In this document: one piece after another, positions 1 to 31,300 of the stretch
Position numbering within the stretch: position 1 is the stretch's first letter
Layout: each line of letters opens with the position of its first letter
DNA from: Hyphochytrium catenoides
Lineage: Eukaryota; Protista; Hyphochytriomycota
NCBI GenBank assembly: GCA_900088475.1
Contig: FLMG01004519.1
Location: 1 to 32,182 of the forward strand
Length of the DNA stretch: 32,182 nt
Direction of reading: 5' to 3'
The notes under the pieces: model-generated
The model's input: only the letters and a program-made list of their open reading frames with translations
What the model was told of the DNA's origin: nothing
The model's database searches: none
Position numbers and translations under genes: made by a program

Positions 1-200
1 GGAGCCAAGGAGATCGACGGCAGGTGGGATAAGGACGAAAGAAGCTAGGAGGACCTTCCTCAAGCTCTTGGCCATGCCTGTCTGCAAAGCAATGTCACCA
101 AGTACCGATCTCCCCGTTTATCCGTGGAGATACCCCTGAAGCTTCATGGGCGGCGTTTGGTATCGTGTGGGAGGTTGCCTCAGCTTCTCATCATAAGATA

Positions 201-3200
201 ATGGCTCCGAAAGCCAGGCGCAAAGCTTCTGGCGCTAGCGCGACCACTTTGCAAGGGGCACGAGCCGCGACGATATTGGAGGAGATCTCTAGTTCTGGCG
301 GGGCTCCTCCTGTGCTTATCTCTGAGCTCTACGCCTTACTGCACAAAGAGCTAGGGGAAAGAAAAGTTATTGACCCAGAGTATTTGGCGGCAGTAGCTCC
401 AAGAGCTTTAGAAACCTCTAAAAGTTGTAAACGAGGGCATCCAGGCAGGATACCAACTTATGGGTCCTACATTGATTGTATGGTCAAAGAGAACACGGAG
501 CCTCCCCCGCTTCTCTCTGCCTCAGCAGCTAGAGAAGTGGCGAGCGAGTATGGTTCAATCCTTATCAAGACCACCCAGACTAGCCTTCAGCTACTGTCAC
601 AAGGCGTACAGGAAGAAGGGAGGCTTAAAGAAGTCATACCGCTTCTTTTGCGCGTGGCATGTCTTTCTGTTTATGCTCTGGACCGCATCCGGAAAGCTCT
701 GAACTGCGGAGAGCTGGCACTGGAGAAGATGGAGTACCAATGCCTAACGAAGTGTGTCGAACATGATGAGGTAAGCCAGGAGTGTCCTTCTTCAGTATAT
801 TTCCAGTGCCATGGCAAACGCCACCCAAAGACCAGAGAAGGGAGAGGCCAAGGGCTGAGCGATGAAAAGGAAACTGAGATGCCAAGACGAAACCCAGTGA
901 CGACCACTAACAGAGAATATGCTATGCTAGTGTTTATCTTGCTGATTGGGCATAGGCTTCGTACTAACACTGGCTGTTGCCCTTCCGTGTTACGGCTATA
1001 GTACTACCTAGGCTGCGAACTCCTGGTGCGACTGAGACACCGACTTACGGAATATCACCATAGTGTGACAGGAAGCCAGAAGCAAGGCGAAGGAGACGGG
1101 CTCAGTAAGCCGCTGGAAATTCTCAGCAAGCTGCCACAAGCAGAGACCTTCCTTCCAGCAACCTTCTCCCGGCTCTGCTGTGGCTACTTGCTTTACTTTA
1201 CCCGGATGCTAGCTTTGGGGCCGCTTACGACGGCGGGCGTTAAAGTAGGCATCCTGGTGTTGATCTCTCGGCCTTGCTGTAGCCGCGTCCTGATTATCTT
1301 CCTTAGGTACTATCACGAGATGTGGTAGATCTCTTCGTGGAACATAGCCAGAGTCTCGCTAAAAGCGGTGAGAAGTCTGCTGCCAAGACTTACCTTGATA
1401 AGATGTTCAAGATTTTATGGAGTGCAGCTTCGGCTGCCACAGCGGCGAAGGTACATATTCCGAGTTTTTTCTGGGGACTGCTCTGTTTCGATTTGCTGCT
1501 TCACTGTCAATACCTCGTAGCTAACACGTCACAAATAGGCAGATGGTATAGACCCATTAGAGCTGCGGCTCGCAGCCTTTCGAATACTAGGCCATCAACA
1601 GACCAACACCTTCCCTTACATCCTGGAGCAGGTATAGTTCCCTTTCGCCCAGGCTTCTTTGCGTATTACTTTGCCTAAGCCTTTCATTTCCTCATCTATT
1701 GCTCCTCGCTAGGCACATCGATGCGGGATTCATGCCGAAAAGCTAATAAAGCGGACACCAGATCGCGAATCAATCATTCAGTTCTATAGAGCTGTTCTTG
1801 GTCTTGCTGTAAGGGACGGAGAGCTGGACTTGGAGAATATTCCTCCTATGAAAGAGAGAAGATGGAAAAATAATGTGAAGGCGACTGTGACTACCTTTAT
1901 TGGGTTTGCTGTTCAGGTACTGCAGGCCGATATTAAACGTCCTGACCCTGGCTTCATGCCCCATTAACCCTTGTCTTTGATACAGACACAATGCGCTCCC
2001 CAAGCCTTTAACGTCCTGGAGCATTTATCCTCCCTCTTGCTGAAAAGTGTAGATCTAGAGGAAGCCCTTGCAGTCCTACTAGCAGTTGAAGATTATATTC
2101 GCGTCCCTGCAAGGAGTTCCTCTTCGTCTATCATACCTTTCTTCTGTAAGTTCCTCCTTAGCGCCCTCCAGTTTGCAACAGAAAGAGCAATGACTCCGAG
2201 TCATCTTTCTCTCGACCAACACTCAAAGACTGCTACAAAGCAGTCCTCTTTTATCAACAATTACTGCTCAAAGATCCTCGATCAGCTCATCGTATGCTCC
2301 GGCATGGAGTCCGTGGCTAGCGCCATTCTTTCGCCTGGAAGTTCTTTGACCGCCCTGCCCAGAAGACTAACAAGGGTTGTCGCGGTCTGGAGAAACGTGA
2401 ACCCTTCCGTGTTTCCTAAACAAAATTCCGAAAAGCTCATTGCCTGGTAAGTCCTGTTACCCTTTACTTTCCTCCCCTGGCCCTTTTTGATAAACCTGAC
2501 TGGTCTCCTACCTCTCCTTCGTGCATGCCCGTCCACTCTTGGTGTTTCCTGACCTAACGGGATTGACTCTTTCATCTAACTTCCATGGGGCGATCTTGCT
2601 TGCCTGCTCATCGACACTGCCTGTGCAGCATCAATAGGCTGGCATTGAGGTTGGAAGACGCAGAACCATCTCAGGTTATGGCTGCTGTGGACAGTATATC
2701 CTCACTTTATCGAGCCAAGGGACAGCTTCTTCACTGGCTTTTGCCGCTCTCAGATGCATCTCTTTATCTGGAGATAGTGCAAGCTTTCCAGAAGTCCTTC
2801 GACGCTCTCGCGAAGTCTTTGACTGTTGCATGTAAGAGTGAAGATGGTGAAAAGAATGGTGAGGGAGACGCGGGCGCCACCCAATCTTCTCTTCTTACCG
2901 AGGCCAATGCCCTTACTGCCGCCAGCTACAATGCTGGGCTTTCTTTCTACAAGCAGAAGGACTTCGAGCAGGCGTCAGCCCTTCTTTCAATATCTTTAAG
3001 GGTTGTTGAGGAATTCTTGCTGGAGAGACTAGGACAGGATAAGACGCTAGAGCAAAGATCTCCTCTTCTTACGATCGCTACTGAGCAAAATCTGCCCTTG
3101 CGCTACAATGTGCTCTCGGCGTGCCATCGCGAATGCGGAGATTGGAAGCAAGCTATGCGAGCTATGGAAGAGGCAGTCTACTGGGATCAGTTACTATCTG

Positions 3201-6200
3201 GAAATAAACTTGACGGAAACAGCAGTTCCTCAGAACACTTGCAGGCATTTGTCTCCTACCATCTGCGGTATGCGCAGGCTTCGTCTTCCGAGTCTACACA
3301 ATCGGCGTGTTCGAGATCTCGGGTCACCATGCCGCGGCCGCAATGCAACAAAAGCGCTAGGCTGCAATGGTTTGTCCAAATTTTCCACAGTTACCTCCCT
3401 TCTGTCGGGGTCGAGAGCCTCGCATCTCGACTACAAGACGTTGCGAGGCAAGCTCAGCAGGAGGAGATTAAGAGAAGAGCACAAACTCAGAACTTTTGCC
3501 CGCTTGAGCCCTTGCCCTCCCTCTTTCGCCTATATAGCAGTCAATATCAACGTTTGCAGAGACAATATCCAGGATGGAGAAACTCCAGGGGACAAACTGC
3601 TCTCCTCCTAACAGCTACGGAAGCTCAGCTAACGCTTCTGCAACTGGTCCAGGAAGCAGGAACTATGACATCAATGGCAACGCTGCATTTGAGAGTAGCA
3701 CAGTCCCTCTTCCAGAGTGTCTCAGCTGCCCTCCATTGTGGAGAGTGTGAAGCTAGCCTAGCGCTGATTGCAGACAAGATCCTGAGTGAGACGTCTGCCG
3801 CCGTAGAGATGGCTAATGACACCTCTCCAGCGAACTCTGAAGAAGTAATAGCGTTAGCCCTGTTGATAGATTGTTGGATGCGCTTCGTTTCTCTGTCCAC
3901 GTTGCAAAAAGAAGAGAGTGATAGAGACGACCTCCGTCCGAGTGTGTCCAGAGCTTTGGACTGTCTTACGTCACTTCTACGGCAGAAGCAGAAAGAAGAC
4001 CGCAGTCCAGCCTTCCCTGCCGACCTCTCCTACACCGTGGAAGAGTTATGGGAAATCCTCGCTTCCGTGGCTAATCTTCTTCAGCTGTATGGCTTTACTG
4101 ATCTAACGGTAAGTAACCTCTTCTTTCTGGAGAGACTTTCTTAGGTAAACCAGGAGCTTGCCTTACTGTTTAGCGAGAGGATTCATCCATTACTGTCACC
4201 ACAACTCATTGAAGACATATGCGTTTGTATCTCCAGGAGCGGTTCTTACTGGATCTCGAAAGTCTGCCGGCAAGGAACGCGCCATGCAGTGGCCTTCTGT
4301 GCCAAGCCGTCAGCGCCCTCCCTACATTGGAACAAGCTGTAAAGGGGGGACACGACTTTCCTGTTACTGTTACAGCTAAGACTTTCAGCGTCATAGAGAA
4401 AGGGCCAAGCTCATTGGCTTCCTGCAGTCATCATGACCTGGTTCAGACATTCCGTAGGACCTTGCTTTGTCCAGCCTCTTTGACACCGAATACACTTCTG
4501 GATGCTGCTTCATCATTCCCAGGAGCCACGGAGAAGCTCACCTCTCGTCTGGAGGCTTTGCTTTTACTGTCACGCACTAAGAGGTCAAAAGAAGAGCAAT
4601 TCCTGGCATTACTAACTGGCGTTAAGCTCGCGGCTGTCGTTTTCCCGTTATCTCTCCTCTCTCGCGTGGAGCTTGAGGACATCCTTGGGCTAAAGGACAC
4701 AGAAGATGCTAGACAGGAGAATGGCGATGATGATGAAGTGATAGAACTATTAGAAGACTTGCACTTAAGTGAAGAAGAATGTAAGGAGACGGATCGTGCC
4801 CTAGACGGACAGCCTGTTGACCTGAAGGGAACCAGGAAGGCACGGAAGGAAGATACCGCAGCGATGGGGCATCTCACCCTACGGCTGTACTCCAGGATTC
4901 TTAACAATGGGTTCACCAGTAGCAGTTTAAAGCTCCTCCACCTCCTTTTGGATCTCCTGCTGGAGGTGTCAGCCCTCTGCAAAGTATATGGTCACTGCCT
5001 GAGGTTCGTACTCTTTCCTCGTCATTGCTCAGCGCCTTTTGAATTCATTTCCTAATCAGTACGAGCTATCATATCTCTCCTGCAATGCTTTACTTCTCAG
5101 GGCCATAACCTACTTGAAATGGGGGCTGTTCCTTTCAAGACAAGCGACGCTCCTCTACTACGAGCTACAATTTTGTCTTCATCTATGCGACATCTATTGT
5201 CAGAGCTGTGAAGCGAAGGAGCAAAGAATCGCTATTCACCTCCATTCCCTTATTAGAGATATCTGGGAGAAGCTCCGACGGAAACCGTTAGGTTCATTTC
5301 TGTCCGCTTCTTTGCTCTACAAACTCCGGATAGAGGTGGCAATCAGTCGTTTGGTGAACGGTCCCCAAGAGCAGCGCCGGACGTGCCAAGCGCTTCGCTC
5401 GTGGGTGGCAAGTGAGCTGCAGAGGCAGAGCGACCACTTTCCGCCGAAAGGAGGAATAGATCAAAAACACTCAAATAATGCGCTTAAGCAGCTACACCTA
5501 CGTTCTTTTTTGGACTTGGCAGAAGCAGAGGCGTGTCTCAAAGAGGCGGAGGATGACGGGGAACGACTGCCCGGAATAGCTGATAAGAAGCGTCTTCGTT
5601 TAGTCGACACGGCGCAGCGTATACTCGAAGATGTATGCCAGAAGTGGGAATCGCTGGCTCAAGATGTCAAACTTCAAGCCTATAGCCTGCTCTGCTATTT
5701 TGGCCGCATAGACAGCAGCAGAAAGGAGAGCATCACTCGTTTAGTCCCTTGGGGTGGCTCTTCATGCTCTCTTGTCCGCTCTTTGGTAATCAAGACAGTA
5801 TACCAAAGCTTAGCTGAGAGTCTCTTCCGGCCAAACGCCGCAGCTTCAACCCGAACCCTAACTGCCCTCCTCCACGCAAGCATTGGAGTCTCGTACCGGC
5901 TGACGAAAGAGTACCATGCCTATTACCATTCCTCCTCTTCGGAGGTGGTAGCTCTGAGACGTCTTTCCAATACCTCTACCTCCCCTGCCGCTTCTCTCCC
6001 TACAGCGGGAAGAACGAAAGGCAACACCACAGCCACTTTCCAGGTGGAAAGAGGGAATGAGAATGTCGGTATTTGCTGGGAAAAGGACGCAATAGAGGAA
6101 TTCAGTCAAGTGATAGACAAAGTCCCATCCAGCTGGACAGTTCTTTCTCTGTCTCTCTCCCGCGATGGCTTGATTGTCTCTAGGGCCCAGGTGAGAGTGC

Positions 6201-8451
6201 ACTACCCTTCTCTCCGACCCAGATCTTTTTCTTGCTTACCCCGTTCCTATCTGCTAACTCGATCAATCAGCGCTTCAAGCAACCACTGGTACGGTTGCTC
6301 TCTAATCCTGAGAATGGAGGTAACTCAGTCCACAAAATGCTAGCAGAGTTCCAAGAGCTGATGGAGAGCAATAGGTAGTACTGTCTAGTTCGCTGTGTAT
6401 AATAGGTCCAACTGTTGGCTGAGTATTGCTTGTTATGGTTGCTTTAGAATGTCTCTGGAGCGTTGCACTATGGCTGAGGCAGCGACCTGGAAAGCTAAGG
6501 ATAAACTCGCCTGGTGGAAGACTCGAGAAGCACTTGATAACCAGCTTAAAGACCTGCTTTCCCTGGTCGAGGTGGTGTTTCTCTTGATATCATTATTTAT
6601 CCTTCCCTTGCTTTGACAGTTGATTATTGTAGGCGAAGGTATTTGGCGTGTGGCATGTTTTGTTAATGCCTGATCCTGCATTAGACGCTGCTATTGAACG
6701 CCAATGGCACTTCCTGCTGCCTGCACTGCGTGAAGGGTTGCGCAAGGAGATGAGAACTTTAGATCACAGTGAGGTAGGTGCCAAAACTTGGAATGCATAT
6801 CCACCTCATCAGGCTCTGGACTGTGAAAAAGTCTGCTCCATGATACTCCAAGGGTTTGGGAGACCCTGCCTCTAGTGTCATCTCTATTTTTCTGTCCTAC
6901 TTCTCAGTCTAGAGGTACTTACTAGGTCTTCTCATCACCGTGCTCGTCCATAAAGGCCGACGATGCAGTTATTCTAGAGCTCCTGCGCCTCTTTACCTGC
7001 CAACACGTTGCCGGGAGAATAAACGCAGCGGAGCTTGCGGATGGCGTGTCACAAGTCCTTTCACCTTATTTTGCCACTGACACGTCATCCCCCGCGCAAG
7101 TTTCTGGACTTCAAAGGCTTCATACCTACATAATGGCAGAGATCAACCGGGCAAAGTCATCTTCTTTTACTTGCCCTTCCTCTCCATCGTCTCTTTCTAC
7201 CAGCTTAGGGTCTTCTGCGGCTCCCCTTCCTGATTTTTCAAAGTTAAAGGTGGTAGAGCTAAAGGCGGAACTAGCAGCCCGCGGTCTGCCAACCAATGAC
7301 CGCAAGGCGGTCTTGGTGCAGCGGTTGATAGACTTTGAGTTGAAAAAGCAAAAGAGCAGTCTGGAGGATAATCAGGAAGACGTAAAAACAGACCACAACG
7401 AGACTGAGGATAACCCTAGCGATGCCCAGCTCATTCTAGTGATAGATTCGGAACTCCATTCATTTCCTTGGGAGAACTTGCCCTGCCTGCGAAATACAGC
7501 GGTCTCTCGTCTGCCCAGCATCTCATTTCTCCAAGCAGCTAGTCAGCGACTTGCTCTAGCTAAACCCTTCAGGGGTCTTTGGAAGAACTCTGCGCTTATC
7601 CTCAATCCCAGTGGAGAACTAAAAGGCACGGAGGAATCGCTTCAGGGAATGGTTAGACAGGTCGAAAAGGAAGGCGGACAGGCATGGATTGGAACTGCGC
7701 CTTCCGCTACAGATTACATGTAAGTCTCTGTTTCTTTCTGTTTGCTTCTTATGTGTGAACAACGGCCTTCGCGGTTGCTTATTTGGGTTGTTCCATCTGA
7801 TCCTTGCCGCCATTACTCGTCCTCTATTATGTCCACAGGGACTTGTTGCAAGATTCTTCCTTATTTATTTATTGCGGACATGGTGGTGGAGAGCGTTACC
7901 TCCATCGAGATAAGCTTAGAGAGCTGAGACATGGGGCTGTGACTGTGCTCATGGGGTGCAGCAGCGGTAAACTCAAGGTACAGGACGAGAATCTCATCAC
8001 TTCAACCCCTTGCTTATGTGTGAGCTCACCTAAAAAGTGCCGTTGAGTAGCTTTTATCAGTCTGTTCACTTAGTCTTACGCCGTTCTTCCCTGCTGCTTT
8101 ACTAAGGCTGAATTTGGTTACGAACCATGGAGCGTGGTTGTCTCACACTTAGTGGCTGGTGCTCCAGCTGTCATAGCAAACCTGTGGGATGTTACAGATA
8201 AGGTAACATCAAGCATCCACTTTCTTGAGCTTGTTCTCACCCTTTCCTCCTGCAAGAGGTGTCGCTTATTTTACTGACACACTCTGTTCAAATGACAGGA
8301 TATCGATAAGTTCTCTCTGTCTTTATTGTGTGGACCGCAAGGCAGTCACAAGACACTTATTGGTCGACTATTGTTTGCTCGGGACCAATGCCGCTTGAGA
8401 TATTTGAACGGCTGTTCTCCCGTCTACTACGGGTTGCCCATCACTCTATAG
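201..8451 (+). CDS. ESP1: Separase (separin, peptidase C50), multi-exon, with long N-terminal helical region
   Basis: ATG at 201 (MAPKARRKAS). First intron is 771-1001 (GTAAGC...TACTAAC...TAG). Spliced C-terminal exons give the separase motifs WWKTREALDNQLKDLL, LILVIDSELHSFPWENLPCL..VSRLPS and ILNPSGEL..TE. Catalytic His is in YCGHGGG (CAT 7879-7881) and catalytic Cys in LMGCSSG (TGC 7957-7959). Further motifs are ANLWDVTDK|DID (intron 8203-8298) and SPVYYGLP, with TAG at 8449-8451. Middle exon boundaries were not all verified. Confidence 0.93.
7235..7336 (+). other. SAP (SAF-A/B, Acinus, PIAS) DNA-binding motif inside the separase coding exon
   Basis: FSKLKVVELKAELAARGLPTNDRKAVLVQRLIDF fits the SAP consensus (L-x-V-x-E-L-K-x2-L-x2-R-G-L-x4-K-x2-L-x2-R-L). 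It lies in the same open frame as the downstream FPWENLP separase motif. Confidence 0.88.
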
Positions 8452-14577: not shown

Positions 14578-16256
14578 TCACTTCCCATCGGCCACTGTCT
14601 TCTTTGACTTCTTCAGGATGTCCTTCACAAACCTGTACAACCGTCAGTCTCTAAGATTTAGGTTATTGGGAAGCCAAGCGCCATACCTGTTTAAGATGTA
14701 GGCAGTTAATCCCCAGACGACATGATGGGCGCCCCTAAAAACTGGGGCACTGTCTTCGCTATATACCCAGTGATTAAGGTCCACTAGCGTCCTGCATAGT
14801 GACATAGAAGAGCGGGGGGATGGGGCCCATCAGGAAATGCGAGATTTTCTCTAGCATCAATTATACTCCCACCGTAAAGGAACTGTGAACCATTCGTCGA
14901 CTTCATCTTTGTTGATGCTGATCTTCAGTTCATTTAGCTCACCAAGGAAGCCGACAACTGGAGTGACTGCTATGCCGGTCAAGGACGTCAGTTCAGTCCA
15001 GTCGCACCTGGCGTCCTCAACTCGGTTAAAAAGTCTCTTTCACAGGAGGTGAGCGGGTTAGAGCGACGGCTACCTTAGGATGCCAAGAACGTCCACTGAG
15101 TCGGCCGGTATGCCAGTCTCCTCCTCCAGCTCTCGCAAGCATGTCTGGATGATAAAGCTATCTTGTTCTCGATCAACCATTCCTCCCGGAAAGCACACCT
15201 CAGACTTGTGCTTCCTGACCTGGTGACGGGGAGTGTGCGCTGAGTTGCCCATGTGAACCGATGCGGAAGATGCAGCAGAGACAAAGAAAGGAAGAAACAG
15301 CGTAGAGGATTGTAAGAGGAACGAACATACCTTTTCAGAACGCTTGGTGAAGAAGACAGCTGGCTCACCATTATAGAAGCATAATGGTAACAGGACGGAA
15401 GCTCGCTGATCCACGGCATTGGTCACTTGTCGCGGCATTCGATTTAGCCTATACTTGATTATCTGCAGATGTTCTGGAGAGAAGCAGACTGTCTCGTCTT
15501 CATTCTTCTGGTCTGCAGACTCTGCGATGCAAGAGGGTCAGCTTTAGACAACTAGAACCTGAAATCTGTAAGCGGTACATACTATTGAGCTTGTGAGCCC
15601 TCCAGGGCTTTAGAGTGGCCTCGAGCTCCTTGAACTTCCCCTCTGCCATAAGTTCGGCGCAACGCTTTAGAGTTTGGTCCCTGTAGGCCCACTCAGCGCT
15701 GATCGTTCGTTACATCTCGCTGGAGGATATTACCATCGTAGTTACCTGTGCCGCAATGCTGAAGCCAGAGCAGGTGCAGTAAAGTTCTGCACTAGGAAGT
15801 CCAAGTCGACATCGGGATCTCTCGATAGCGGTACTAGGAACACATTTAGCTCTGAAGCTCCATCACGTCTCGCATCTACGACAAGAGAAATAAGGTTCAG
15901 ACCACCGATGCTGCAGCAACCTGTACCAAGGATAACCCCATACCATTCTCCACCAAGGGCCCGGGGGGCACCGCGGGAGGAGGATTCACCCCAGAGAAGG
16001 ACCCTGGCGCTGCTGACTGTCCTTCTTTGGCTATCTTCTTTGAGTTCGCTGCCTGTCCTTCTTTGGCTATCTTCTTTGAGTTCCCCTCGTGTTTCTGCCA
16101 AGCAGGGCTGGCTGAAGCTACCGAACCACTGCTATGAAAGAAGCGGAGACTCTGGCTGGTCCGCAGCTGTTTAAGACTTCTCCAAACACGCCTGTCCCAA
16201 CATGTGAGGCTCGATATATATTTTGTCGTTGAGCGGAGGCCTTGACCACGTCTCAT
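14578..16256 (-). CDS. NUDT8: Nudix hydrolase, CoA diphosphatase family (NUDT8/NUDT7/Pcd1-like), probably mitochondrial; 8 exons, about 390 aa
   Basis: Phase-consistent exons: 16256-15944, 15875-15746, 15680-15583, 15521-15331, 15219-15074, 15007-14873, 14791-14687, 14632-14578. It has the CoA motif RASVLLPL..FTKRSEKVRKHKSEVCFPGG, the Nudix box GGMVD..TCLRELEEETGI, and VTPVVGF, DEVDEWFTVPL and VWGLTAYIL. The N-terminus is Arg/Ser-rich (MRRGQGLRST..SLRFFHSS) and there is no PTS1 at the C-terminus (..ADGK*). Confidence 0.88.
16017..16083. repeat. Tandem duplication with 36-bp period in Nudix exon 1
   Basis: CTGTCCTTCTTTGGCTATCTTCTTTGAGTTC is identical at 16017-16047 and 16053-16083, encoding NSKKIAKEGQ twice on the minus strand. 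Confidence 0.95.
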
Positions 16257-19340: not shown

Positions 19341-20662
19341 ATGATGCCAGCCAGCATCCTCCGCTATCGGTGAGTGCTCAAATCAGCCGACTGGCGCCTA
19401 TAAAGAACGAGACTAACGGCCGTCACTCTATCCTCTATCTTTGTTGTGGTTACAGTCACCCATACCTGGCGAATTGGGCCATCTGTATAGACACAGAGAA
19501 GGAGCTGCGATACTTTTGTGAGATGTCTACTGGCTTTTGCTCACAAGTTGACCCAATGTCTGCACTCTCACAAGACGCCGTTCCCGTGCACCTAAAAGCG
19601 TTAGCACCCTCGAGAGGAGTTTTCCTGGATGGTTGTCGAGGAAGAAGCAGGAGTCTTTCCCCATTAAGAAAGAGGTCCATGCGTCACACATATGGACGAA
19701 TAGATTGCATGCCAGACATCTCCCATTTGGTCAGGCCATCAGCAAGCCCAGAGTCTCCTGCTTCAACTTCAGCAGAGCAGGCAGTTCTTATAGTCGAAAA
19801 GGAATACGAAGAGCGACAGACTGAGCCCGAGATATGCCAAGAGGTGGCCAAGCAGGAAGCACCGTCGAGGGAGGAGCCAGTTCAAACAGAGAATCTCAAC
19901 CCTGCTTCAGACGATGACTCGACCGTCTCATGTGATGGCAGTTTTGAAGACTCTGCCGCTGTCCCAACAATGGCTCCCGGCTTAGTGCGAAATGAGCGGA
20001 GCACAAGGCCGCATGGAAGGGAAAGCCGGCCTTCTGCAGTAAGAGAGCCATCCAACAGGAAAGCTTCAAGGTCAGGGCCAAAGAAAGCTGTCCAACGGTC
20101 AGAAGCAGGATCGCGATGGGTGAAAGTTGAGAAGACGAAGCCTGTCAGTACTCAGCCTTCAGAAAGTCTTAAAGCAGGGGACCATGCCGCCTCCTCTTCT
20201 TCTATAGAGCCAGCGATAACAAAGGTTTGGCAGGTGAAGGGGAATTATCAGGACGGTGTGCTGCGGGTCGAGCGCTCGGAGGTGCCTGCAAACAAGCTCA
20301 AGACGCTGGAGACGATGAGGGCAAAGGAAGATATATCCGTACAGGGATCAGAGCATTCTAGGGCCACGAAGACAGATATCAATGCGAGGCCTAGAGACAG
20401 AGTGCAGAGAAGAAAAGCTTCGGAAGGAGAGAATAATGACGATGCCGACAGGCAGGCATCTCAAAGGAGGGCAAGGGGAGACAGGTTCCAAGGGAGAAAA
20501 CAGCACTCTGACCATCGTCGAATCCTGAGCGAAAGGAATGCCTCTGACATTAAAAGCAACAGACGGCCGCACCGACCGGGAAAGCACCAGGAGAAGCTCA
20601 GCTGGAAGCCGAAGTCGGACACTAACAGGAAGCCCATGCCTCCTGAAGCGCGAGCAGCTTAG
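19341..20662 (+). CDS. Hypothetical, mostly disordered Ser/Arg/Glu-rich protein; 5' end uncertain
   Basis: A 1.2-kb stop-free frame ends at TAG 20660-20662. A well-formed intron at 19370-19455 (GTGAGT...ACTAAC...TACAG) joins ATG 19341 in phase. The first exon's frame is open back to 19272, so further upstream exons are possible. Confidence 0.6.
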
Positions 20663-21440
20663 CCAGTAGAACGGTAGAGCAATATATATGTGGACGACAC
20701 GTTGAGGACAAGCGGCCAGAACGAGTCGAAGAAGTATCGCTCGTAGGTCCACGACCTTCCCCTCGCTGTTAGTTCTCCTTTCCGTCTCTGGCCTACTCGC
20801 AGATAGAGCAGCAGAGCTTACTGTAAGCCTAAGATAATAATAGAGGTATTTGCACTGTAATAAAGCTTAGCCATTCTGATTATTGGAGGGAATGGGTGAA
20901 AAGAAAGTTTGGCGGGAAGCAAGGACGGAAGAAGAACTGGACGACTTTGCGAGGATGAGGAAGAGGATCTTCTCAGCAGAAGATCATCAGTAGTTCTTGC
21001 TCACAGCTCAAGCAGATAGAGCTCTGCTGATCCTTTAGTCGCAGGAGTCGAATTATGCCTGCTCCCTGGCATAGGATATACTGGCCTTCCTGCAGCTTGG
21101 TGGTCTACTCTCTGAGGATCTAGCTCCAGCTGCCACCTTGCTCGCATCTTTCATTCGTCGTTAGTCGAAGTGGTCTCTGTCCTGAAGAAAAGAGGAGCTG
21201 GGATGTACGCTACCGGTTAAGTGCCTTGGAGAGATTGCAAGGCTTTATAATAAGTCTAGTTTAGAAGGAGCGGGCGAAGAGCCTAATAAGGCTTTTCCAG
21301 CCCCAGGGAAGCCGGCAACTGCGATAGCCAGAAGTGGAAAATCGAGTGAAGGCCGGTCTGGTTGGGTGCTCGAGCTCTTGCCCCGCGTCTCAGCTTAGGC
21401 TTCTGCGCCGCGGATGAGGCACTCATAGGTTGATACACCG

Positions 21441-22303
21441 ATGGAGATCATCGATGTAGACGCTGATGAGAGCGACTGGCTCCCTGAGCCGGGCAAAGAA
21501 AAAGAGGAGGCTCAGGACAGGATGACAAAGGACCTGCGGAGTGGATCCAGCAGTCATCGTGCTCCAACTCCTCAATTGAACGGCTTCACTACCCCCAGAG
21601 AAAGCCGTAAACGAGGCCGCAGAGGAGACCAAGAGAGACACACCTTTGGGGCCAGAGGAAAGAGGCCATCGCCTTCTCCGACTAGTAGTAACGGCGAGAC
21701 TCCGCCCCCAAACCTAGGGCCCCGCACAATTGACTCCTTCTTTCAGAGCAAGTCGCCAGCGCTCTCTCCGGCCGAGGAGAAGCAAAGGTAATGCTGGCAT
21801 AGCTTAGCCATCAATCAATCCTAACTCGGTCTACCGGTCTTACATGGGTGTCGAGGTCGCTTTTCTCTTCACGTTGTCCTTGTAACTCTTGATACCCTCT
21901 ATGTAGCTGCATTGCGGTGTCGCCATCCTACGCTCTTCTTCCGGGCTCCTATCTCTTCCCGGTCCCTTGACTTCTGCTGCTATTAAAAGCTCTATGCTCA
22001 GATCCTCATGCTTCTCGCTTTTATATTCCCCTTTCCTTTCTCCCTTCTGATTCTATAGGTTGGTAGAGAAGCTGCCGAAATGGGGAGCTCTGGTCCAATC
22101 GCCCTGCGCCACTCGGTCCTTTGAAAAGTCGCTGGAACCAGTGCGATATAGGCGCGCCTTCCATCTGAACTACAGGTCATCGCTAGGAGGATTCAATCGT
22201 CGACCTCCAGGTGATAAAGCACTGCGACTGTTGTCTCTTGCTGATTTTGAAGGAACCTGTGTTCACTCTATTCTCCGCTTCTCTCCATTTCTATCTCTCT
22301 CTT

Positions 22304-22380
<77 letters not shown>

Positions 22381-25300
22381 TTGTGTTTGACTGTCCTTTG
22401 TTCCTGCTTGCCTTTATCTTGCCCTTTGCTACCTGTCTTCACGTTGATTGGTTTCTTTGATCGTAACCTCTGGGCCAGGCGTGGGAACGTACGCCAAATG
22501 GTGGAGAGGCTCACGCTCAAGGCTCTTTGGAGGTGGAGAGAACCCTCTGATAGCGCCAAGGGTTCTTGACAATGGGGAGCAGCAGTCAAATGGAGGCCAG
22601 GGTTTTCAATGGGAGAATGACTGCCATAACTTCAAGCTCATGGCAGACTTTTGCCTAGTCAATGGAGAGACTTTTTTCGTTGACAGACGGCACAAAGAGT
22701 TGGTACAGTTCTTGCGGTGGCAGGCATCTGATGAGGAGCTGCGCCTATGTCTGTTTCTTTACCATCAAGCTAGGATTTGGTCAAGGTGGAAGAAGGATCA
22801 TGGGGACGCGGAACTATTGTCTCCCTCAATGGTAGAAGATAGTATCAGTCCTCCAATGTTGAAGCGCTTAGGGAGTGGGCGGAAGCACAAGGAGGAGATC
22901 AACATGTCCCACATAGAAAATCTTTCTGCCATCAATATTATCAAGGTTCTAGCCCCTGAGGAAATAGAGTGTGTTCCTTCCGAAGAGCTTATGAAGATAC
23001 TCAGCAAAAGGGAGTGCCTGACTCTGGAAAGGAGCATTGTATTGTCTAAGGTATCCAAGAAGGAGCCTAAAGTGCAGACGGAGTACAATGAAGCCTGGCT
23101 TGACAAGAATAGGAAGAAGAGGTACGAGTTAGGGCTATAGTCAAGCAGGGGCAAGTGAGTGAACTAAACAGAGGGGTATCGTGAGCTAAGGAATGACCAA
23201 CGTGTCAAGAGAAGCATAGAAAATGGCGACATGGCGTGCCGCAGATCCTAGGCAAAACGATACTGCCATGAATAAAAGCCGGTGACAGGCAGAAGGGTCA
23301 GGGACAAGCGAGGAAGCAGGAGGAGGTGGAAAGAGGAGATCTAACGTCATCTATACAGCTCCTTTGCCAAGGTTCTGAGCCGAATGTTGTGCATAGAGTC
23401 ACTTACGGTCACACTGGGGGATGAAGCCTTTCTGGCCCTTTATTACTGTCATGTCGCCTTTCTGACTGTCTGCGGCTACGAGCCAGAGGATGCTATCGGT
23501 GAGTGACTCTCCTCGAGCCTGTTTAGCTAGCCCCTCTTGCTAAAGAAGTATCAGCCTTATGCTCCCAAGTAGCTGAGTTCTTAGTCCCCTCCATTGCGTG
23601 CATCTACCGTTCACCATCTGTTTGGCCGGTAGGGAGTAATAGTTTCTGTCGTCTGACACTTCTGCGATGATGTACTAATGTGCGGCCCTGTGCTTTCACT
23701 TGATTCGGGCCTTCTACCTGATCCCGGGATTGGCCTTCTTGACTTCTTTAGCTCTCTTGCTCTCGGACGTCCCGGGGTTATCATTCGCGTCTGGAGCTTA
23801 TTTTCCGCAGAAAGGAGCCGGAGGGGCCATGGAAGTGGAGGACGAACGAGCGACAGATGCTCTGGTTCAGTCTCTGTTCCAGAGTGTTTTTGAGTTTGAG
23901 TCATACCTGGACGTGAGTGAACGCTGTCATGATCCCTAGCCTTCTCTCTTCTGGCTGAGATCGTCCTTTGAATACCCCTAGATTTGTGGACGCGAGTTAT
24001 CTCCCGTCTTCTCTCCTTATGATTCGATTTCGCCTCCTCTTTTTCCCTAGCTTTCAATCCGCTCAGGGCTTCCCCTTAAGGTCCGCAGTGGAACGTAAAG
24101 GCCTCTTCCGTTGCTCTCTCCCTTCGCTCGAAGCTTAACTCCATCATGTCGTGTCGTCCCAATTCTAGGCACTTAACGTCTCGGACACATTTGAAGCGGC
24201 GGTGGAGGTTGGGAACGAAGCAATTGCATATGAATGCTTTCATAAGGCCAGCAACATTCTGCTGATGTTCTCTTCGTCATCATCTCCGGCGTCATTTTCG
24301 TCTGATACTCCTGTCGATAGCTCTGCTGGTTCAGAGAAGGAGAACAAAGAAGATGTACATTTCTTGCTTACGCCTTTCGGGCGGACATGCACGGTGCTAG
24401 AGCGAGTCATATTCTGCGGCATTTCTCTTCTGGAGAGAGAGAAAAAATACTCAGAAGCCATTCACTATATCCAGCTCGTTCTTTCTGCTTCGCATCCCGT
24501 CATTTTCAAGGCCCAGCGGAGCTTACTCTGGTTTAGGCTATCAATGGTACCAGTGCAAAACCCACGCGCCCCTCTTCTCCCTTCCTCGTTATAGTTGTCG
24601 ACTTTCTTGCTGTTTCGAGCGGAGTTTTCTCCAAGGCAATGCATTGCATCTCTGCTGCTTTTGTCTCCGTCGCCATCCTCTTCCTGCTCATGTTCGCCTT
24701 ATCTCCTTCAGGATTACTATCACCTTGGAAGCGCCTCAAAGGCTCTTGAGGCTTGCGAGCTGGGGCTGGAAGATCTCCACGTAGGGGGTGGGGATCGTCT
24801 GCAGTTAGAGGACCGCTGCATGCGGTTGAGCTCTCCACCTCTGAGATGGAAAAAGCCCAGCATTCCGACAAGGATCACTGCTGAGATCAGGTACAGAGAG
24901 AGAAAGAGTCAGGGTAGACCTGCCAGGACATTTTATGGATGGCTCTCATATTCTGAAACTGGGAGGACCCGGGCGTGCTCCAGATAACGTTTGCTCTTTG
25001 GCCGCCTGATTCCTGAAAGGAGAATTTTGGTTTTGGCTTCTCGATTGATTTTGTCTCCACTTCCGCCTTTCATGGTAAGCATCTGATATCTTCTCTGGCC
25101 TCTTGCATGTTATCAGGACTTTAAAAGAGGAAGAAGTTGCCACACAACCTTGTCAGGCCACGGACGTAGGTGCAACAACCGAGAATGGCGGGCCGTTAGG
25201 TGACGGAGTGACGGGAGGTAGCATTGAAGACAAAGTGAAGAGGTGGTACCTCAACTATCTTTGTAGAAGAGACGACCTGGAAAATGGAATAGTTGCACTA

Positions 25301-26393
25301 GATTGCGCTCCTTCTGCACAATGGACTGGAATGCACGCTGAGAATGGGATCTTCCTCACTCTCTTCTCTCTCTTGTGCTGGGAGGTCATCTTCCCGACCC
25401 CGCCCGACGGAGAAAGAAAGGAAGACCTCGGTATACAGCTGCCATACCAAGACTGTCCTTTGGACTTCTTCTCCTTCACCTTTTTCAGAAGAAGACACAG
25501 AAAAGCACTACTGGAGGTCGAACTAGAAAGGATTAAGGAAGGTAAACATCTCTGGGCTCTCCAGGCGCTTTTCCTCCACTCTTTCTGCTGGGCCTCTTGG
25601 CTTTCGAGTCTAAAGGGCCTGTTGATGGCTGCGCATGACTGTCCGTGCCTCAAACCACGTTTCATAGGCTACGCCGAGATCCTCAAGGCAATGTGGCAAA
25701 GACATTGTCCCTCCGTCTGTGTGGGATGTGACTGGTCCAGGAACTCTCTGGAAGAACTATTGAGGATTGCTAATGGCCTTGGAGGTCTGGTTCTCGCTGA
25801 AGTCTGTCGCACTTTGGCTGAGAACTATCCGGAGTATTCACACGGCTTCCCAGACCTCATTCTGTGGACCCAAACTGGAGAGTAGGTCAAGCATTATCCT
25901 TGTCTCTAAAACCCATTGCGTTAGTGCAGTAAGCGTCTCTCATTCATCAGCTTAGCTCGTGGACTGTTAGCTGAGCCTTTTTAGCTGACTTCACTGTTTC
26001 TGCAGGCCCAAGGTCCTTCTAGTTGAGGTGAAGGGTCCAGGAGATAGACTGAGGTAAGCTACAATCAGATGCACACCAGTCAATTACCTAGTCGTTGCTC
26101 CTTCGGTGTCAAGACTTTCAATGCCATCGTTCTCACTGAATCCATTTACTTGCATGTCTCTGTCTCATCCCTTTCGCCTCTCGGTTCGTCAGCTACGCCC
26201 AACATCATTGGATTCACAGGTAAGCTGAGAACAAAATCTTTCTGTGCAAGAGACTGATGTCTGAGAGTTCCTTTTGTCTAATAGGCTGCGAGGCGCTGGT
26301 GCCAGCGTAGAAGTGTGCTATGTCCTCAGGGACAAGTCTTCTCCCTCTTCCTCTCCACCAGTAGGCGAACAGTCGCCTCCTATTGAACCATAA
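21441..26393 (+). CDS. FAN1: Fanconi-associated nuclease 1 (VRR-NUC, PD-(D/E)XK nuclease), multi-exon
   Basis: Spliced C-terminal exons give GMHAENGIFLTLFSLLCWEVIF, PYQDCPLDFFSFTF and LAENYPEYSHGFPDLILW, then VLLVEVKGPGDRL (about 26013-26052) and YAQHHWIHR..GASVEVCYV, with TAA at 26391-26393. A TPR-like segment LLEREKKYSEAIHYIQLVL..LWFRLS lies upstream. The start at ATG 21441 is inferred from a phase-consistent intron (21788-22058). Some internal exons are unresolved. Confidence 0.88.
22288..22382. repeat. Compound (CT)n microsatellite with a 12-bp higher-order unit (TTTCTCTCTCTC) in a FAN1 intron
   Basis: Directly visible, almost pure pyrimidine tract of about 95 bp. Confidence 0.95.
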
Positions 26394-27578
26394 CTTAGCA
26401 CACACACACACCTACTTGTGACTGATATTTTCTCTTACCATCCAAAGAATGCATGCATCTGTCTCTCGCTCCAGCCCCTCTGATGTTTGTTACTTTCCAG
26501 GCTGCTGCTGAACTATGTTTCTTGTTCACTGCCTTCCTATCCAGGTGTTAAGTCTCTTTTACCTCCTTCACCTCTTCTCATCTCTGTTCTTCTGCTTCAG
26601 TTCTCGACCTATTGCACCTTTGTCTGCTCTTCTTGCCTTTGGACCATGACCATACCCAACCTTCCAACTCTGGAGGGCGTACTTTCGCGAGGCATCCACA
26701 GTGAGCTGTCTGTGAGGTGCTACGTACTGCGCCCAATAGTGAGCGTGATCTCTGATGACTTGCTGCGACGAGACTCGCAGTAGGACAGATACGGATCGGA
26801 CACATCAAAGAGAGAGGAATGGTTTAACGAAATGATCGTGATTGCTCCTGGTAGCTTCCATTCCAGCTCCACCCAGCCCGAAGAGAGGATACACCTAAGT
26901 TGAACCCCTTACAAAGGGCTGCACAAGATTCAATAATCTTAGACTTTATAAGACAGACTTTCCTTGGGCTCGGCAACACCGCCTCCAACAGGAAGAAGTC
27001 CCTTCCCCAGGGTCAGCATCCACCACTTTCCAAGCAACGGCGACCCTTCCCGCGCCTCTCACATTCACTTACACGAATGACTTCACGGGTTGTCTTGTTC
27101 AGTTGTACGGGCCATTGCCTAAGGAGGCCAAGACATGCCTCGCCTCACACAGACTGAGCGACGGATTATGTATGTCTAACATGATGAGCGATAAGCGCAT
27201 AACTTACTTCGGGTATTGACTTGCGTCTGCGCATGTCATCGGTGCGTATCAGTACCCCTCACTTTCCCCATTTGAGCTTCCTCTTCCTCGTAAGCAAAGT
27301 CCTTGCCCACTTCCTTGATGTTGATTTATATTCAGGCAAGAGCGATATCACAGAGAACCTGGTGCCACTAGCAGTGGTGGCATTATCGGCAATGGAATGG
27401 GAACAAACAATGGAGTATGACACTAAGGAGAGATGCATAGGGAGGAGCAAACTAGATACATCTGGCCTCAATGTTTGACAGAGATTGACCAGAGGCCTGG
27501 TATTATGCTGATCTTTAAGGCGTAAGTGAAAGAGAGATCCGCGCTTCGTTCCCTCTTTAGATGGGTACCCCAGCACGA

Positions 27579-28919
27579 CTACCAGACCACTGGAAGTTCC
27601 TTTATGCCAACATCCTTTTCTGGAGGTGTGTACTTGACCTCAGAGAAAGGGATAGCGAGCTTGAGAGAAGGAAGCTTCTGAAATATGGTGCCAAAAACGG
27701 ACTGCAGCTCTGCTCGCGCTAGCCACTCGGCGATGCATTCATGAATGCCATAACCGAACGCCAGATGAGGATTTGGTTGGCGATGGATGTCGAAGGTATC
27801 GGGATCCTGGAAGACATTGTCATCTCTATTCGCGGACTGGTTGGATGCAATTAAACCTTCGCCCGCCTTAATCCGGGTCCCCGCGAAGGTCACGTCCTCC
27901 TTCGCTACTCTCCTCATTGCTAAAGCAGAGGCAGTATGATAGCGCAATATCTCTTCGACGGCTGAAGAGACCAGCGTAGGATTCTTCTTGAGCTCGTCGA
28001 GTTGTTTAGGGTGTTCCAATAGAGTTACGACCCCAAGCGCTATCATGCTCACCATCGTAGCGTTGCCAGCCACCAACAAGAGAAATGTGATGCGCACAAG
28101 GTCTTCATGCTCCAAATGCCCCGGACGGAGCTGTTCGGCTACTAGTCTGCTGATGAGGTCATCGGTCGGTTGCTGTTCCTTCTTGACAATCAGTTTATCC
28201 AAATAGTCCGACAGTTCTTTACTCGCTGCGGACGCTTGGGTGGACGTAGAGCTTCCACTCGTTCGAACAGCGTTACAACTGGTAAGGTACTCCATGTCTT
28301 CGTAAGGAATCCCCAAGAGCCGGTAGATAATCTGGGTTGGCACTGGAAAGGCGAAGCTCTCGATAAGATCCACCGGTTGTTTGCCATCGTGTTTCTTCAT
28401 CATTGCGTCCAAGGAGTCCTCCACTGTCCTTTGAATGCTTTGGCGCATCGTCTCGACATTTTGCTTTGAGAAGAATGGGTTGACCATTCCTCTCTGAACA
28501 GTGTGTTCTGGTGGGTCCATATCAACAAAGGTCGGTCTTAGCGAGGCAGCGGCCCTACCCCCGGCATCGAGCTCTGGAAATCCCTTCCAAGTGCGAATCT
28601 TGCTAAAGCGATTGTCTTCCGAGAGACTGCAGACATCCTTGTGCCGCGTGACCAGCCAGGCTGTGCTGCCATCCCAAAGCTTCACCTTCGAGAGTCCGTC
28701 TTTCTTACGCATATCTGCAAACTCTGCAGGGGGTTCATACCCTGACGGACGCCTGAACGGAAAGCATGGAATGTCTCCTTCTTTCGTTGCCGTAGGATTC
28801 GTAGCCATGCTGCGGACCGTCCAAGAAGCAACGTTGAGGCGTCTCGACTGCCAATGCCTCGAAAGCTGCTTCACCGCGCTACGATAGGTCAATGAACCGG
28901 TGACCGTCCTAAAGCACAT
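27579..28919 (-). CDS. CYP55: Cytochrome P450nor (CYP55 family nitric-oxide reductase), intronless; 446 aa from ATG 28919 or 409 aa from ATG 28808
   Basis: The single ORF has CYP55 hallmarks FPFxRxSGxEPPAEF, SKIRT.KGFPEL..GG, PTFVDMDPPEH and NAVRTSGSST. It also has the I-helix FLLLVAGNATMV (the usual acidic residue before Thr is replaced by Ala), the K-helix EEILRYHTASALA, IASNQSANRD, the heme motif FGYGIHECIAE and the C-terminal YTP..KDVGI..LPV. Equivalents of Fusarium P450nor R64, R174, T243, S286 and D393 are all present. Confidence 0.95.
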   Translation of the reverse strand: MCFRTVTGSLTYRSAVKQLSRHWQSRRLNVASWTVRSMATNPTATKEGDIPCFPFRRPSGYEPPAEFADMRKKDGLSKVKLWDGSTAWLVTRHKDVCSLSEDNRFSKIRTWKGFPELDAGGRAAASLRPTFVDMDPPEHTVQRGMVNPFFSKQNVETMRQSIQRTVEDSLDAMMKKHDGKQPVDLIESFAFPVPTQIIYRLLGIPYEDMEYLTSCNAVRTSGSSTSTQASAASKELSDYLDKLIVKKEQQPTDDLISRLVAEQLRPGHLEHEDLVRITFLLLVAGNATMVSMIALGVVTLLEHPKQLDELKKNPTLVSSAVEEILRYHTASALAMRRVAKEDVTFAGTRIKAGEGLIASNQSANRDDNVFQDPDTFDIHRQPNPHLAFGYGIHECIAEWLARAELQSVFGTIFQKLPSLKLAIPFSEVKYTPPEKDVGIKELPVVW

Positions 28920-30130
28920 TGCTGTCTGCGCGGGTATCAAAGCGATTTTGATTATGATTAACAATGATCATAAAGAAGCTTGGCGCTACGTGCCTGCAAT
29001 CGCTGAGGGCCTACTACTAGCTACCGTTCCCTCTTCTCTTGTATGATGCATCGAGTATGCCCTTCCCCCCGGCCGGTGGGCGGATAACTTAAAGTTCTGA
29101 CAAATTAAGGAGCCGAGTGATTGGCGCTTTCGTCTGAAGGGTCGGTCTTGTATGCTATGCGTCAAGTCAAGGCCAGCACCTGTGCAAAGTCCCCGAAGAA
29201 AGAATATGTGTAATCGATCGGGAGATGCCAGCTGGTTCTCACGCATCAACTGTTAAGTTGTCCAGGAAGATGGCACAGACGGCAGAGCCTACTTTAGCAA
29301 CTAAGCCAAAGTAACCCCACCTCAAGTGTCATCATGCAGCATTCTTCTGTTTGTCACTCAGCAGCAAGATTCTGTCTGCCGGTTAGCTGTATGGACAACA
29401 GCGATGTTCTCAGGCTGCAGAAGGGAGGATGGAAGGGTCCGAACTACCTGGCGGTGCGACAGTCAACAGCGGCAGCATGTGTTGGAGCCAAAACGACTAG
29501 TGGCGGGTGGCCGCCGTGTTGCACATCATTATGAGTAATGCTCTTCGTCATGTCACAAAGATCGTGATGTTCCATGCAACAGAGAGCAGATGGAGGACAA
29601 CCTCGCCAAAAGCAAGGAAAACCAAGACTCCAGAAGAGGGCAAACTCACCATCATGTTATTGCCTCATCCAGTGTCATGGCAGTAGTACGGAGCAAGCAG
29701 CGGACAGGTAGACAGAAGAACTAGAACCTCAATAGAGAACCAGCAGGGCGTAGCAAGCTCTCCGGAAAGAATGGAGGCAAATCTCCGCCGCTGCTCGCTG
29801 CTGTGTCACCTTCGCAGCTGCGTCTCTGCTGGATCCTTCTCCTTCCTCATCATCGGCACACAACGCACTACGGCTGGCTTAGAACTACTAGTGCTATGTC
29901 GCCATGGTGGCTGACAGTTCAAACTAAGACAGAACCTCCATCCTCCAAACCCCACTTTTTTTTTCCACCTGTGGTTTCTTCTGGTTGTCTTTTCTTCATT
30001 AATAAGGCCGTTCTAAGTATGGCCCAACAATGTCAGTAAGATAAAAAGCCCAGTTCCATTTGTAAGCGCGGACCTATGGGCTACGCTCGACGCCTTTGTC
30101 AAAGGAAAGGAACTGTCAATTCGCACCAGC

Positions 30131-30424
30131 TCTTGTACTTGTACAAGTCTTGACTCTCTTGTAAGTACAAGTTATAAAGAGGTGAATACTTGTATTCCTG
30201 GCAAGGGTCTTGTTTGTTGACGATGAGGGCTCTGGGGACTTGTTGCTGGCAAGCTACTTGGTACTTGTCTACGATCCTCTCACTTACACTTATTATTTAC
30301 TTGTAACTGACGACTCTTGTTATTAGCGTTACAAGTTACAAGCATCAAGCGTCGAGAGCAAGACTCTTGGGAAGCTCCAGCTTGTCACTTCTCACCTCAA
30401 TGCTTGCAAGCACTTCTTGCAAGA
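30131..30424. repeat. Cluster of CTTG/CAAG (often CTTGT/ACAAG) motifs with short palindromes
   Basis: About 25 CTTG or CAAG occurrences in about 295 bp by manual count. Palindromes are ACTTGTACAAGT (30137-30148), TGCTTGCAAGCA (30401-30412) and TCTTGCAAGA (30415-30424). Confidence 0.75.
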
Positions 30425-30825
30425 GCACTTTTCTCAAAGTTCTACATCATCATAGGCCTTGATCCTATGGGTAATAAGTCCCTTGTCCTCTCCATCTCTG
30501 GTCCTCCTTTGCCTCCTTCCTCCTAATCGCCTGGCCTGAATGGTCTCAGATGATGTCGACGCGATGATGATGAGTGGTGGCGATGAGAAGAGGGCGATGA
30601 TCTAATAACTACAATCACTTATTATTAGCAGATGGGTGGTCCTCACCACAGACAGGGAGGAGACATGTCGTTGGAAGATCACTGACAATGTACTCGCCGC
30701 AGTTTGCTATTTTTGCCCGGTCACTCACTTCCAGAGATAGAGATGACTGCCAAGCCACGATGATTGCGATTCCTGAGAGCTGTGATACATCATGTCGTCG
30801 ATTCTTGAGGATGAAACTGTCCGAC

Positions 30826-31300
30826 TCCGCATCACAAAGAGCTATCGAAGTCAGGTGATGATTGATGATGGATAAAGACCGCAGCAGCCACCAATAATCT
30901 ATTATCGGGCAATCTGTTGGTCAATCTGTAGGATATTACTGCTTCCTATCACGCTTGGGATGACAAGAGACTGCATGTGTAGCTAGCCTCCGTACGGTCC
31001 TTGTTCGCCCTTCGTGATATGTGTCACCAGGCCAGTCACCACCCACCAGACACATTGTCAACAAGATAAGTCCTATTCCGCATCACAAAGAGCTATCTGA
31101 GTCAGGTGAACGATATTTGATGATGGATAAAGACCGCAGCCACTAATGTATTCTCAATCAACTGATATGGATGCAGATGTTGCTGCTTATTACCATAGTT
31201 ACGAAGAGGAGGATGTAAGAAACTCCATGTATGGCTAACATATCTATGGTGCTTGTTCGCCCTTCGTGATACCTCACCAGTCACAGGTGTCAAGATAAGT
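30826..31300. repeat. Degenerate direct tandem duplication, period about 250 bp
   Basis: Shared blocks are TCCGCATCACAAAGAGCTATC (30826 and 31077), TGATGATGGATAAAGACCGCAGC in both copies, CTTGTTCGCCCTTCGTGATA (31000 and 31252) and CAAGATAAGT (31062 and 31291). Confidence 0.85.

Follow-up and report, generated by a model that had tools for sequence, protein, structure and literature searches.

The p450nor gene serves as a marker for crediting soil N2O emission to fungi. Its known distribution among eukaryotes takes in fungi and three green algae and leaves out the protists represented in RefSeq, the likely bacterial source of the family being actinobacterial CYP105, and it has been argued that some p450nor genes serve secondary metabolism rather than denitrification (Higgins et al. 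2018, PMC6161760). A comparison of fungal and oomycete CYPomes recorded CYP55, the P450 family concerned, only in Pezizomycotina, Phanerochaete and Streptomyces (Moktali et al. 2012, PMC3505482). Among chlorophytes CYP55 is present in 39% of those tabulated, which had been preselected for at least one NO-pathway gene, and the diatom Thalassiosira has a truncated CYP55 fragment only (Bellido-Pedraza et al. 2020, PMC7412212). The Chlamydomonas enzyme is located in mitochondria and produces N2O in darkness (PMC7412212).

Against this background, a stretch of 32,182 nucleotides from Hyphochytrium catenoides (contig FLMG01004519.1 of assembly GCA_900088475.1, referred to here as the window) contains a complete, intronless CYP55 coding sequence of the P450nor type, which lies on the minus strand at 27579..28919 and encodes 446 amino acids, the stop codon being included in the coordinates. 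The identification draws on the list of open reading frames, Pfam, a PDB sequence search, a tree and a structural model. The reading frame is open throughout 27579..28964, with its first ATG at 28919, an in-frame stop 16 codons 5' of that ATG and the stop codon of the gene at 27579-27581. In the PDB sequence search residues 50-445 align with Fusarium P450nor with one 2-residue gap only, and because this end-to-end alignment holds just that single gap the gene is taken as complete and without an intron. The original prediction, made from the sequence alone, had called a complete frame with these same boundaries and had left the strand unstated. The exact protein, looked up under each of three possible starts, is absent from a collection of 15 billion proteins.

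The H. catenoides genome paper and its supplements make no mention of P450 or nitric oxide (PMC5795050). No CYP55 or P450nor transfer is recorded in the 2026 osmotroph HGT paper or in its supplements, where P450 and nitric oxide appear only in unrelated KEGG and annotation text, and a literature search returned no paper that connects Hyphochytrium with CYP55 or P450nor. The novelty lies in the host lineage and in a deep CYP55 branch of its own. The enzyme chemistry and the family are already known, and the gain concerns the distribution and evolution of CYP55 and not its mechanism.

What, then, marks the window protein as a P450nor? Its sole Pfam match is PF00067 (p450, E 3.6e-28). The twelve best distinct sequences in the PDB search are all P450nor/CYP55A1, with E values from 1e-148 to 1e-150, in comparison with 2e-90 for the best CYP105. 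P450 nomenclature ties membership of a family to at least 40% identity to a named member, and by this rule the 56-57% identity to Fusarium CYP55A1 places the window protein in CYP55. When Fusarium numbering is transferred through a HMMER alignment, and the positions are checked on a MAFFT alignment of 67 sequences, K62, R64, E71, D88, R174, T243, S286, C352 and D393 are all found to be conserved. The residues K62, R64 and R174, which we take to be the positively charged NAD(P)H site of the distal pocket, together with the Glu71-Arg64-Asp88 network, are complete in the window protein, invariant in the 56 CYP55 rows of the alignment and mostly missing from its bacterial outgroup. Thr243, Ser286 and Asp393, presumably the proton-delivery residues of P450nor, correspond to T288, S331 and D436 in the numbering of the window protein.

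The I-helix carries the motif AGNAT (residues 284-288, 28056..28070, minus strand), in which alignment equates Thr288 with Fusarium Thr243; this motif presumably stands where oxygen-activating P450s carry their acid-alcohol pair, and at the Asn-Ala columns the bacterial CYP105-like outgroup has His followed mostly by Glu or Asp. The heme-binding loop FGYGIHECIAE (residues 388-398, 27726..27758, minus strand) supplies Cys395 as the thiolate ligand, the counterpart in the alignment of Fusarium Cys352. Seventeen columns were treated as diagnostic of CYP55, their residue being at least 95% conserved over the 56 CYP55 rows but hardly present in eight bacterial CYP105-like sequences, and the window protein matches 15 of them. 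It departs from the set at K122R and at G387A, the latter producing a bacterial-like LAFG in place of the LGFG of CYP55.

The fold points the same way. An AlphaFold2 model computed from an input alignment of 30 sequences has a mean pLDDT of 84 and exceeds 90 in the greater part of the domain; residues 1-47 (pLDDT below 50) and 221-228 are disordered. A Foldseek comparison with the PDB places nine P450nor entries at the top (TM 0.95 by target for 1XQD/1ROM, rmsd 1.9 A, 56-57% identity), with CYP105 entries ranking after them at 38-41% identity. Searches with the protein returned only actinobacterial P450 clusters from the ESM Atlas and only distant P450s from the clusters of the AlphaFold DB. 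The window gene is a member of the CYP55 family with intact catalytic residues, a point on which sequence, diagnostic residues, tree and fold bear out the original prediction, and the motifs quoted with that prediction are all found in the protein (AGNATMVSMIALG, HTASALA, IASNQSANRD, QLRPGH, DIHRQPNP, AEWLARAE and LPVVW). The protein is a probable NO reductase.

The catalytic domain is preceded by an N-terminal extension of 37 residues, MCFRTVTGSLTYRSAVKQLSRHWQSRRLNVASWTVRS (28809..28919, minus strand), which falls in the disordered part of the model. It contains six Arg and a single Lys, lacks Asp and Glu altogether, and is probably a mitochondrial presequence; similar non-conserved N-terminal extensions are present in several relatives. 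A second ATG at 28808 opens a 409-residue form (MATNPT..., 27579..28808, minus strand) that, from the list of open reading frames and the alignment with Fusarium P450nor, equates to the catalytic domain, and through alternative initiation this start may give a cytosolic isoform. The second Met comes directly after the extension and shortly before the conserved domain, which begins near residue 50. In Fusarium and Cylindrocarpon P450nor a second Met after the extension leads to two isoforms.

A word-indexed protein search produced, as its best 120 matches, proteins with 53-70% identity, the foremost being unclassified Logan and JGI proteins, a protein of the Pleopsidium flavum lichen MAG (66%) and one of the trebouxiophyte [Myrmecia] bisecta (68%), followed by many ascomycete CYP55A proteins at 54-62%; no protein of an oomycete or other stramenopile is among these 120. 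Neither the protein databases nor the JGI metagenome contigs searched gave a relative of more than 70% identity, the contigs giving no match above 68%. An exhaustive phmmer search against 50%-identity representatives found only three clusters with at least 50% identity over the full domain; the matches below these had 36-45% identity, and those examined are an Aspergillus paralogue and actinobacterial P450s.

The placement of the protein within the family was approached with two trees, a quick one of 121 rows and a careful one of 67 rows (IQ-TREE, LG+C20+F+G4 PMSF, 1000 UFBoot and SH-aLRT), in which the green algae are represented by Myrmecia and Trebouxia and the Chlamydomonas- or Chlorella-type (chlorophycean) CYP55B is left out; the two trees are concordant on the position of the window protein. 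A maximum-likelihood phylogeny had been proposed along with the original prediction, and the careful tree groups the window protein with CYP55, apart from the bacterial CYP105-like outgroup, at a split supported by 100/100. Within CYP55 it is a solitary branch of length 0.38 in a basal polytomy. It is left out of the crown fungal clade (35 rows, 100/96) and of a mixed clade of 14 rows (99/93) comprising Myrmecia, the Pleopsidium MAG and several intronless environmental genes, and it also lies outside a Trebouxia pair and a fourth small clade of unclassified CYP55 sequences. A grouping of the window protein with Myrmecia or Trebouxia receives no support in the careful tree. A tree constrained to place it with the crown fungal clade is worse by 10.8 log-likelihood units (AU p=0.032), a modest rejection, since this grouping was chosen for the test with the tree already in view. 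On the CYP55 side of the tree there is also a divergent pair of Aspergillus paralogues without K62 and D88, in which T243 is replaced by Ala and D393 by Asn, one of the two also being without R174.

The main crown fungal clade, minus its two earliest branches, has two extra residues before the heme loop, an insertion that is missing from the window protein, from the basal CYP55 sequences and from the bacterial outgroup. The short form of the loop, DIHRxP..LxFGYG, occurs in basal CYP55 sequences as well as in the outgroup bacteria, and is therefore ancestral rather than indicative of an algal affinity. The sequence had been thought to mix fungal-like and algal-like traits and perhaps to represent a distinct CYP55 branch. 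The mixture is there, but its supposedly algal loop proves to be the ancestral state, and the distinct branch is seen in the lone, deep position of a protein to which nothing searched is more than 70% identical.

The gene lies among ordinary genes that are rich in introns. A multi-exon separase gene (about 33..7723, plus strand) has SAP and peptidase C50 domains (exon at 7046-7723) and is followed by a long pair of HEAT-like open reading frames (8572-11697, minus strand). A Nudix gene of CoA-pyrophosphatase-like type (about 14790..15537, minus strand) comes next, and then a multi-exon FAN1-like nuclease gene (19370..25885, plus strand), which has a VRR_NUC domain in its exon at 25103-25885 and is convergent with the P450nor gene. 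The local genes are intron-rich, since the Nudix gene packs three or more short GT-AG introns, each 65-102 nt long, into about 750 nt, and the P450nor gene has none. About 3.2 kb of the window is without recognisable genes, and this portion includes a 252-bp tandem duplication.

The 672-residue HEAT-like frame has no match among 5.8 billion proteins, and the Nudix frame, called stramenopile-like in the original prediction, has environmental matches only, at no more than 65% identity and none of them taxonomically labelled. The ESM Atlas confirmed the families of the separase and FAN1-like exons, although its taxon labels are coarse, with a faint lean of the FAN1 exon to Oomycota (0.63) as against Ascomycota (0.57). 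The view that the host is neither a fungus nor a green alga is probably right, judged by the intron-rich flanks and by the two searched flanking frames without a named homologue. No nirK had been noticed in the window, and a Pfam scan of 21 of its open reading frames, with smaller frames left out, likewise found no Cu-oxidase or nirK-like domain; the same scan found no PKS, NRPS, terpene synthase or other cluster-type domain. A scan of the window against Rfam gave no matches, and a window-wide search for U12-type introns gave two motif pairs only, neither fitting a gene model.

Is the gene a genuine resident of this genome? Contigs of four runs were mapped on positions 25000-30900 of the window, and the locus was found in two 2011 runs of one sample and in one 2017 run. 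In the independent run X1 a single contig of 2903 nt over 25166-28067 reaches from the last FAN1-like exon into the P450nor gene, of which it takes in 490 nt at the 3' end, and the word depth, at about 26, is equal over the gene and its flanks. In run X3 the depth of about 300-335 is similar over gene and flanks, and there is a contig gap at about 28068-28438. In X1 and X3 alike, numerous single bases across the P450nor gene and the flanks differ from the window, which fits the pattern expected from two alleles of a diploid; the differences listed within the coding sequence, of which there are at least nine, include six that are synonymous and three that are conservative (G410A, F376V and S318A).

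In the soil metagenome X4 contigs are about 90-97% identical to the window on the FAN1-like exon and on the P450nor gene, and not on the spacer, and a wild relative therefore carries both genes. Run X6, which was guessed to be RNA and is labelled as another organism, has one 193-nt contig (28096-28286) with two SNPs in common with the second allele, and this is faint evidence of transcription of the P450nor gene. The linkage in X1, the equal depth, the mostly synonymous allelic SNPs and the copies in X4 show that the gene is not an assembly artefact.

In base composition (GC 0.52, GC3 0.58) the gene lies inside the span of values shown by the flanking exons, or near it. Its RSCU correlation with the pooled flanking exons is 0.33, the host exons among themselves having values of 0.27-0.62, and codon usage was dropped as a signal of transfer with the gene lying inside the spread of the flanking exons. 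The genome project assembled 4758 scaffolds with an N50 of 35.6 kb from two GAIIx lanes and one HiSeq lane, using a strain sourced from pine pollen, and reported heterozygous SNPs at about 2% and 3.64 introns per gene (PMC5795050). The two 2011 runs and the single 2017 run that contain the locus match this set of lanes.

We consider it likely that the locus represents a working P450nor in a diploid, intron-rich soil protist, a hyphochytrid stramenopile (H. catenoides or a very close relative), that was acquired horizontally and has a role in the removal of NO. How do the alternatives compare with this? It is unlikely, though worth weighing with care, that the scaffold derives from a fungus or green alga, either as the organism sequenced or as a contaminant of the culture, in which CYP55 was inherited vertically. 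The named close relatives of the protein are indeed all fungal or trebouxiophyte, and the closest sequences of all, at 64-70% identity, are intronless genes from a lichen-fungus MAG and from rock-metagenome contigs. Yet thousands of fungi have been sequenced and the protein remains a lone branch with no more than 70% identity to anything, while of the two searched flanking frames without a named homologue one has no match of any kind, and a 672-residue frame without a relative in 5.8 billion proteins is unexpected in the Dikarya or in a trebouxiophyte. The gene also has a depth like that of its flanks in two libraries and SNPs of the diploid type seen genome-wide in H. catenoides (PMC5795050), and the project applied four contamination screens (PMC5795050), which speak against a contaminant.

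The two other explanations concern the function or the history of the gene. A CYP55 P450 might act in secondary metabolism, for instance in NO-dependent nitration or another tailoring step, and not as an NO reductase, N2O being a by-product at most. Higgins et al. 2018 (PMC6161760) tie the evolution of p450nor to gene clusters for secondary metabolites and to TxtE-like chemistry, and the divergent Aspergillus paralogues, without several catalytic residues, fall on the CYP55 side of the tree as well; but the window protein retains all of the NADH-site and proton-delivery residues that those paralogues have lost, no cluster-type domain turned up in the 21 frames scanned and the neighbours are housekeeping genes (separase, FAN1-like and Nudix), so that such a role appears improbable.

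We regard as more improbable still, if slightly, an ancient gene that descended vertically in stramenopiles or that marks the original entry of CYP55 into eukaryotes from actinobacteria. The branch is basal within the CYP55 polytomy and retains the ancestral short loop before the heme site along with the bacterial-like LAFG, as such a history would have it, but the basal position is without support either way, and no oomycete or stramenopile is among the best matches. The gene is moreover intronless in an intron-rich genome, and the literature is without a stramenopile CYP55 except for the truncated Thalassiosira fragment (PMC6161760, PMC3505482, PMC7412212).

Returning to the favoured reading, that of a horizontally acquired P450nor in a hyphochytrid, the enzyme would operate by analogy with Fusarium P450nor. 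The ferric heme would bind NO, NAD(P)H would dock in the distal pocket and pass a hydride directly, with no redox partner, and a second NO would then react to give N2O and water. The 37-residue basic extension probably sends one form of the protein to mitochondria, and the second ATG may provide a cytosolic form. The likely role would be detoxification of NO, or dissimilation of nitrite-derived NO at low oxygen, with N2O as the product. The gene would be a resident nuclear locus, at single-copy depth, most likely received from a fungus or an alga in which an early-branching CYP55 lineage was present, and the transfer would be old enough for the base composition of the gene to match that of the host. 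Points for transfer are the intronless gene in an intron-rich setting, the lack of an oomycete among the best 120 matches and the absence of CYP55 from oomycete CYPomes (PMC3505482) and from the protists of RefSeq (PMC6161760); transfer into the H. catenoides lineage from a fungal or algal carrier is the most likely direction, and both direction and age are inferred, with the tree of 67 rows singling out no donor and leaving the window branch in the basal polytomy.

If the intact copy does reside in a free-living stramenopile, surveys of p450nor could assign a protist signal to fungi, the 'pseudofungi' would gain a further fungal-style trait by gene transfer, and the group to which H. catenoides belongs may also produce N2O. 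As a lone deep branch it is a data point on the spread of CYP55 among eukaryotes after its actinobacterial origin. On balance we lean towards a wider reading, in which a hyphochytrid with its own deep-branching, functional and HGT-derived CYP55 would make stramenopile osmotrophs a third eukaryotic group, beside fungi and green algae, capable of converting NO to N2O, and in which CYP55 would have moved repeatedly among soil- and lichen-associated eukaryotes.

Set beside the known systems, the window protein has the same fold as the actinobacterial CYP105 enzymes, such as CYP105A1 and CYP105D7, at 38-41% identity; among the bacterial outgroup members sampled, the Lys/Arg NADH site, S286 and D393 are missing from most, and the I-helix Asn-Ala is missing from all. 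The algal proteins are closer, with 67-68% identity for [Myrmecia] bisecta (P0007) and about 61% for Trebouxia sp. (P0324), and like the window protein they have the short form of the loop, QLRPGH and AEWLARAE. The Myrmecia gene is intron-rich, since it spans 4.9 kb to code for 407 residues, whereas the window gene is intronless. The highest identities, 64-70%, belong to the basal CYP55 clade of lichen and rock communities (P0001-P0005, P0310 and the Pleopsidium flavum MAG), the genes of which are, like the window gene, intronless and of the short loop form, some with N-terminal extensions. They are, however, joined with an alga in the 99/93 clade that leaves out the window protein, and they adjoin a conserved short-chain dehydrogenase gene that is not found beside the window gene.

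Finally, in comparison with Fusarium oxysporum P450nor (CYP55A1; PDB 1ROM, 1XQD and 1CL6), the window protein is without the 2-residue insertion of the crown clade and has Asp and Gly in place of Ser and Ser at positions 73 and 75, which we take to influence the choice between NADH and NADPH in P450nor. The two proteins are alike in the heme loop, in AGNAT and in S286 and D393, and each has a basic N-terminal extension followed by a second in-frame Met.

The DNA upstream of the P450nor gene, the intronless CYP55 ORF of the window, contains few genes. Across this gene-poor stretch (29137-30900) the contig depth is roughly doubled and several haplotype indels are found, with a 247-nt skipped form being present in both of the DNA sequencing runs. 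The stretch runs into a tandem duplication at 30819-31271, in which two copies of about 252 bp share 80-93% identity, and the whole is probably either repetitive sequence or a region of strong heterozygosity. Within the P450nor gene, a 193-nt contig from run X6 aligns to window positions 28096-28286 and agrees with the second allele, the alternative SNP haplotype of the locus, at two SNPs. X6 is a 2022 run that is labelled as a different organism and whose RNA nature is a guess, and the match reflects either the presence of the same species in that sample or a loose label.

Further along the window, in a separase exon on the plus strand (7046-7723), a SAP DNA-binding domain immediately precedes the C50 protease domain, an order that is not known to have been described. 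Next to it on the minus strand, a HEAT-like ORF of 672 aa (8572-10590) carries only a weak hint of TORTIFOLIA1_C and gave zero matches at E<=1e-3 among 8000 word-sharing candidates out of 5.8 billion proteins. The gene is either specific to its lineage or evolving rapidly.

Amongst the database relatives of the window protein, two are fusion-like. P0065 of Colletotrichum costaricense (718 aa) has a methyltransferase domain N-terminal to CYP55, and P0133 of Friedmanniomyces simplex (979 aa) combines two CYP55 stretches with a metallo-beta-lactamase label; these are either true fusions or merged gene models. P0010, an intronless CYP55 with 65% identity to the window protein, is located on a 9.6-kb contig (L005; region 2766-7681) of the NCBI assembly GCA_040384145.1. 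About 1.2 kb upstream of it lie ORFs in which the domains Oxidored_molyb, Mo-co_dimer, FAD_binding_6 and NAD_binding_1 are present, a content that marks a nitrate-reductase-type gene, and the gene order therefore may represent a nitrate reductase-P450nor pair.

A well-supported basal CYP55 clade (99/93; L003:6001-10914, L004:5224-6525 and L006:10001-11218) mixes two kinds of gene. That of the lichen-type alga [Myrmecia] bisecta is intron-rich, encoding 407 aa over 4.9 kb on a 1.2-Mb contig, and the others, from a Pleopsidium lichen-fungus MAG and fungal-looking metagenome contigs, are intronless. The occurrence of both kinds in one clade suggests that CYP55 has moved between lichen partners or relatives of these.
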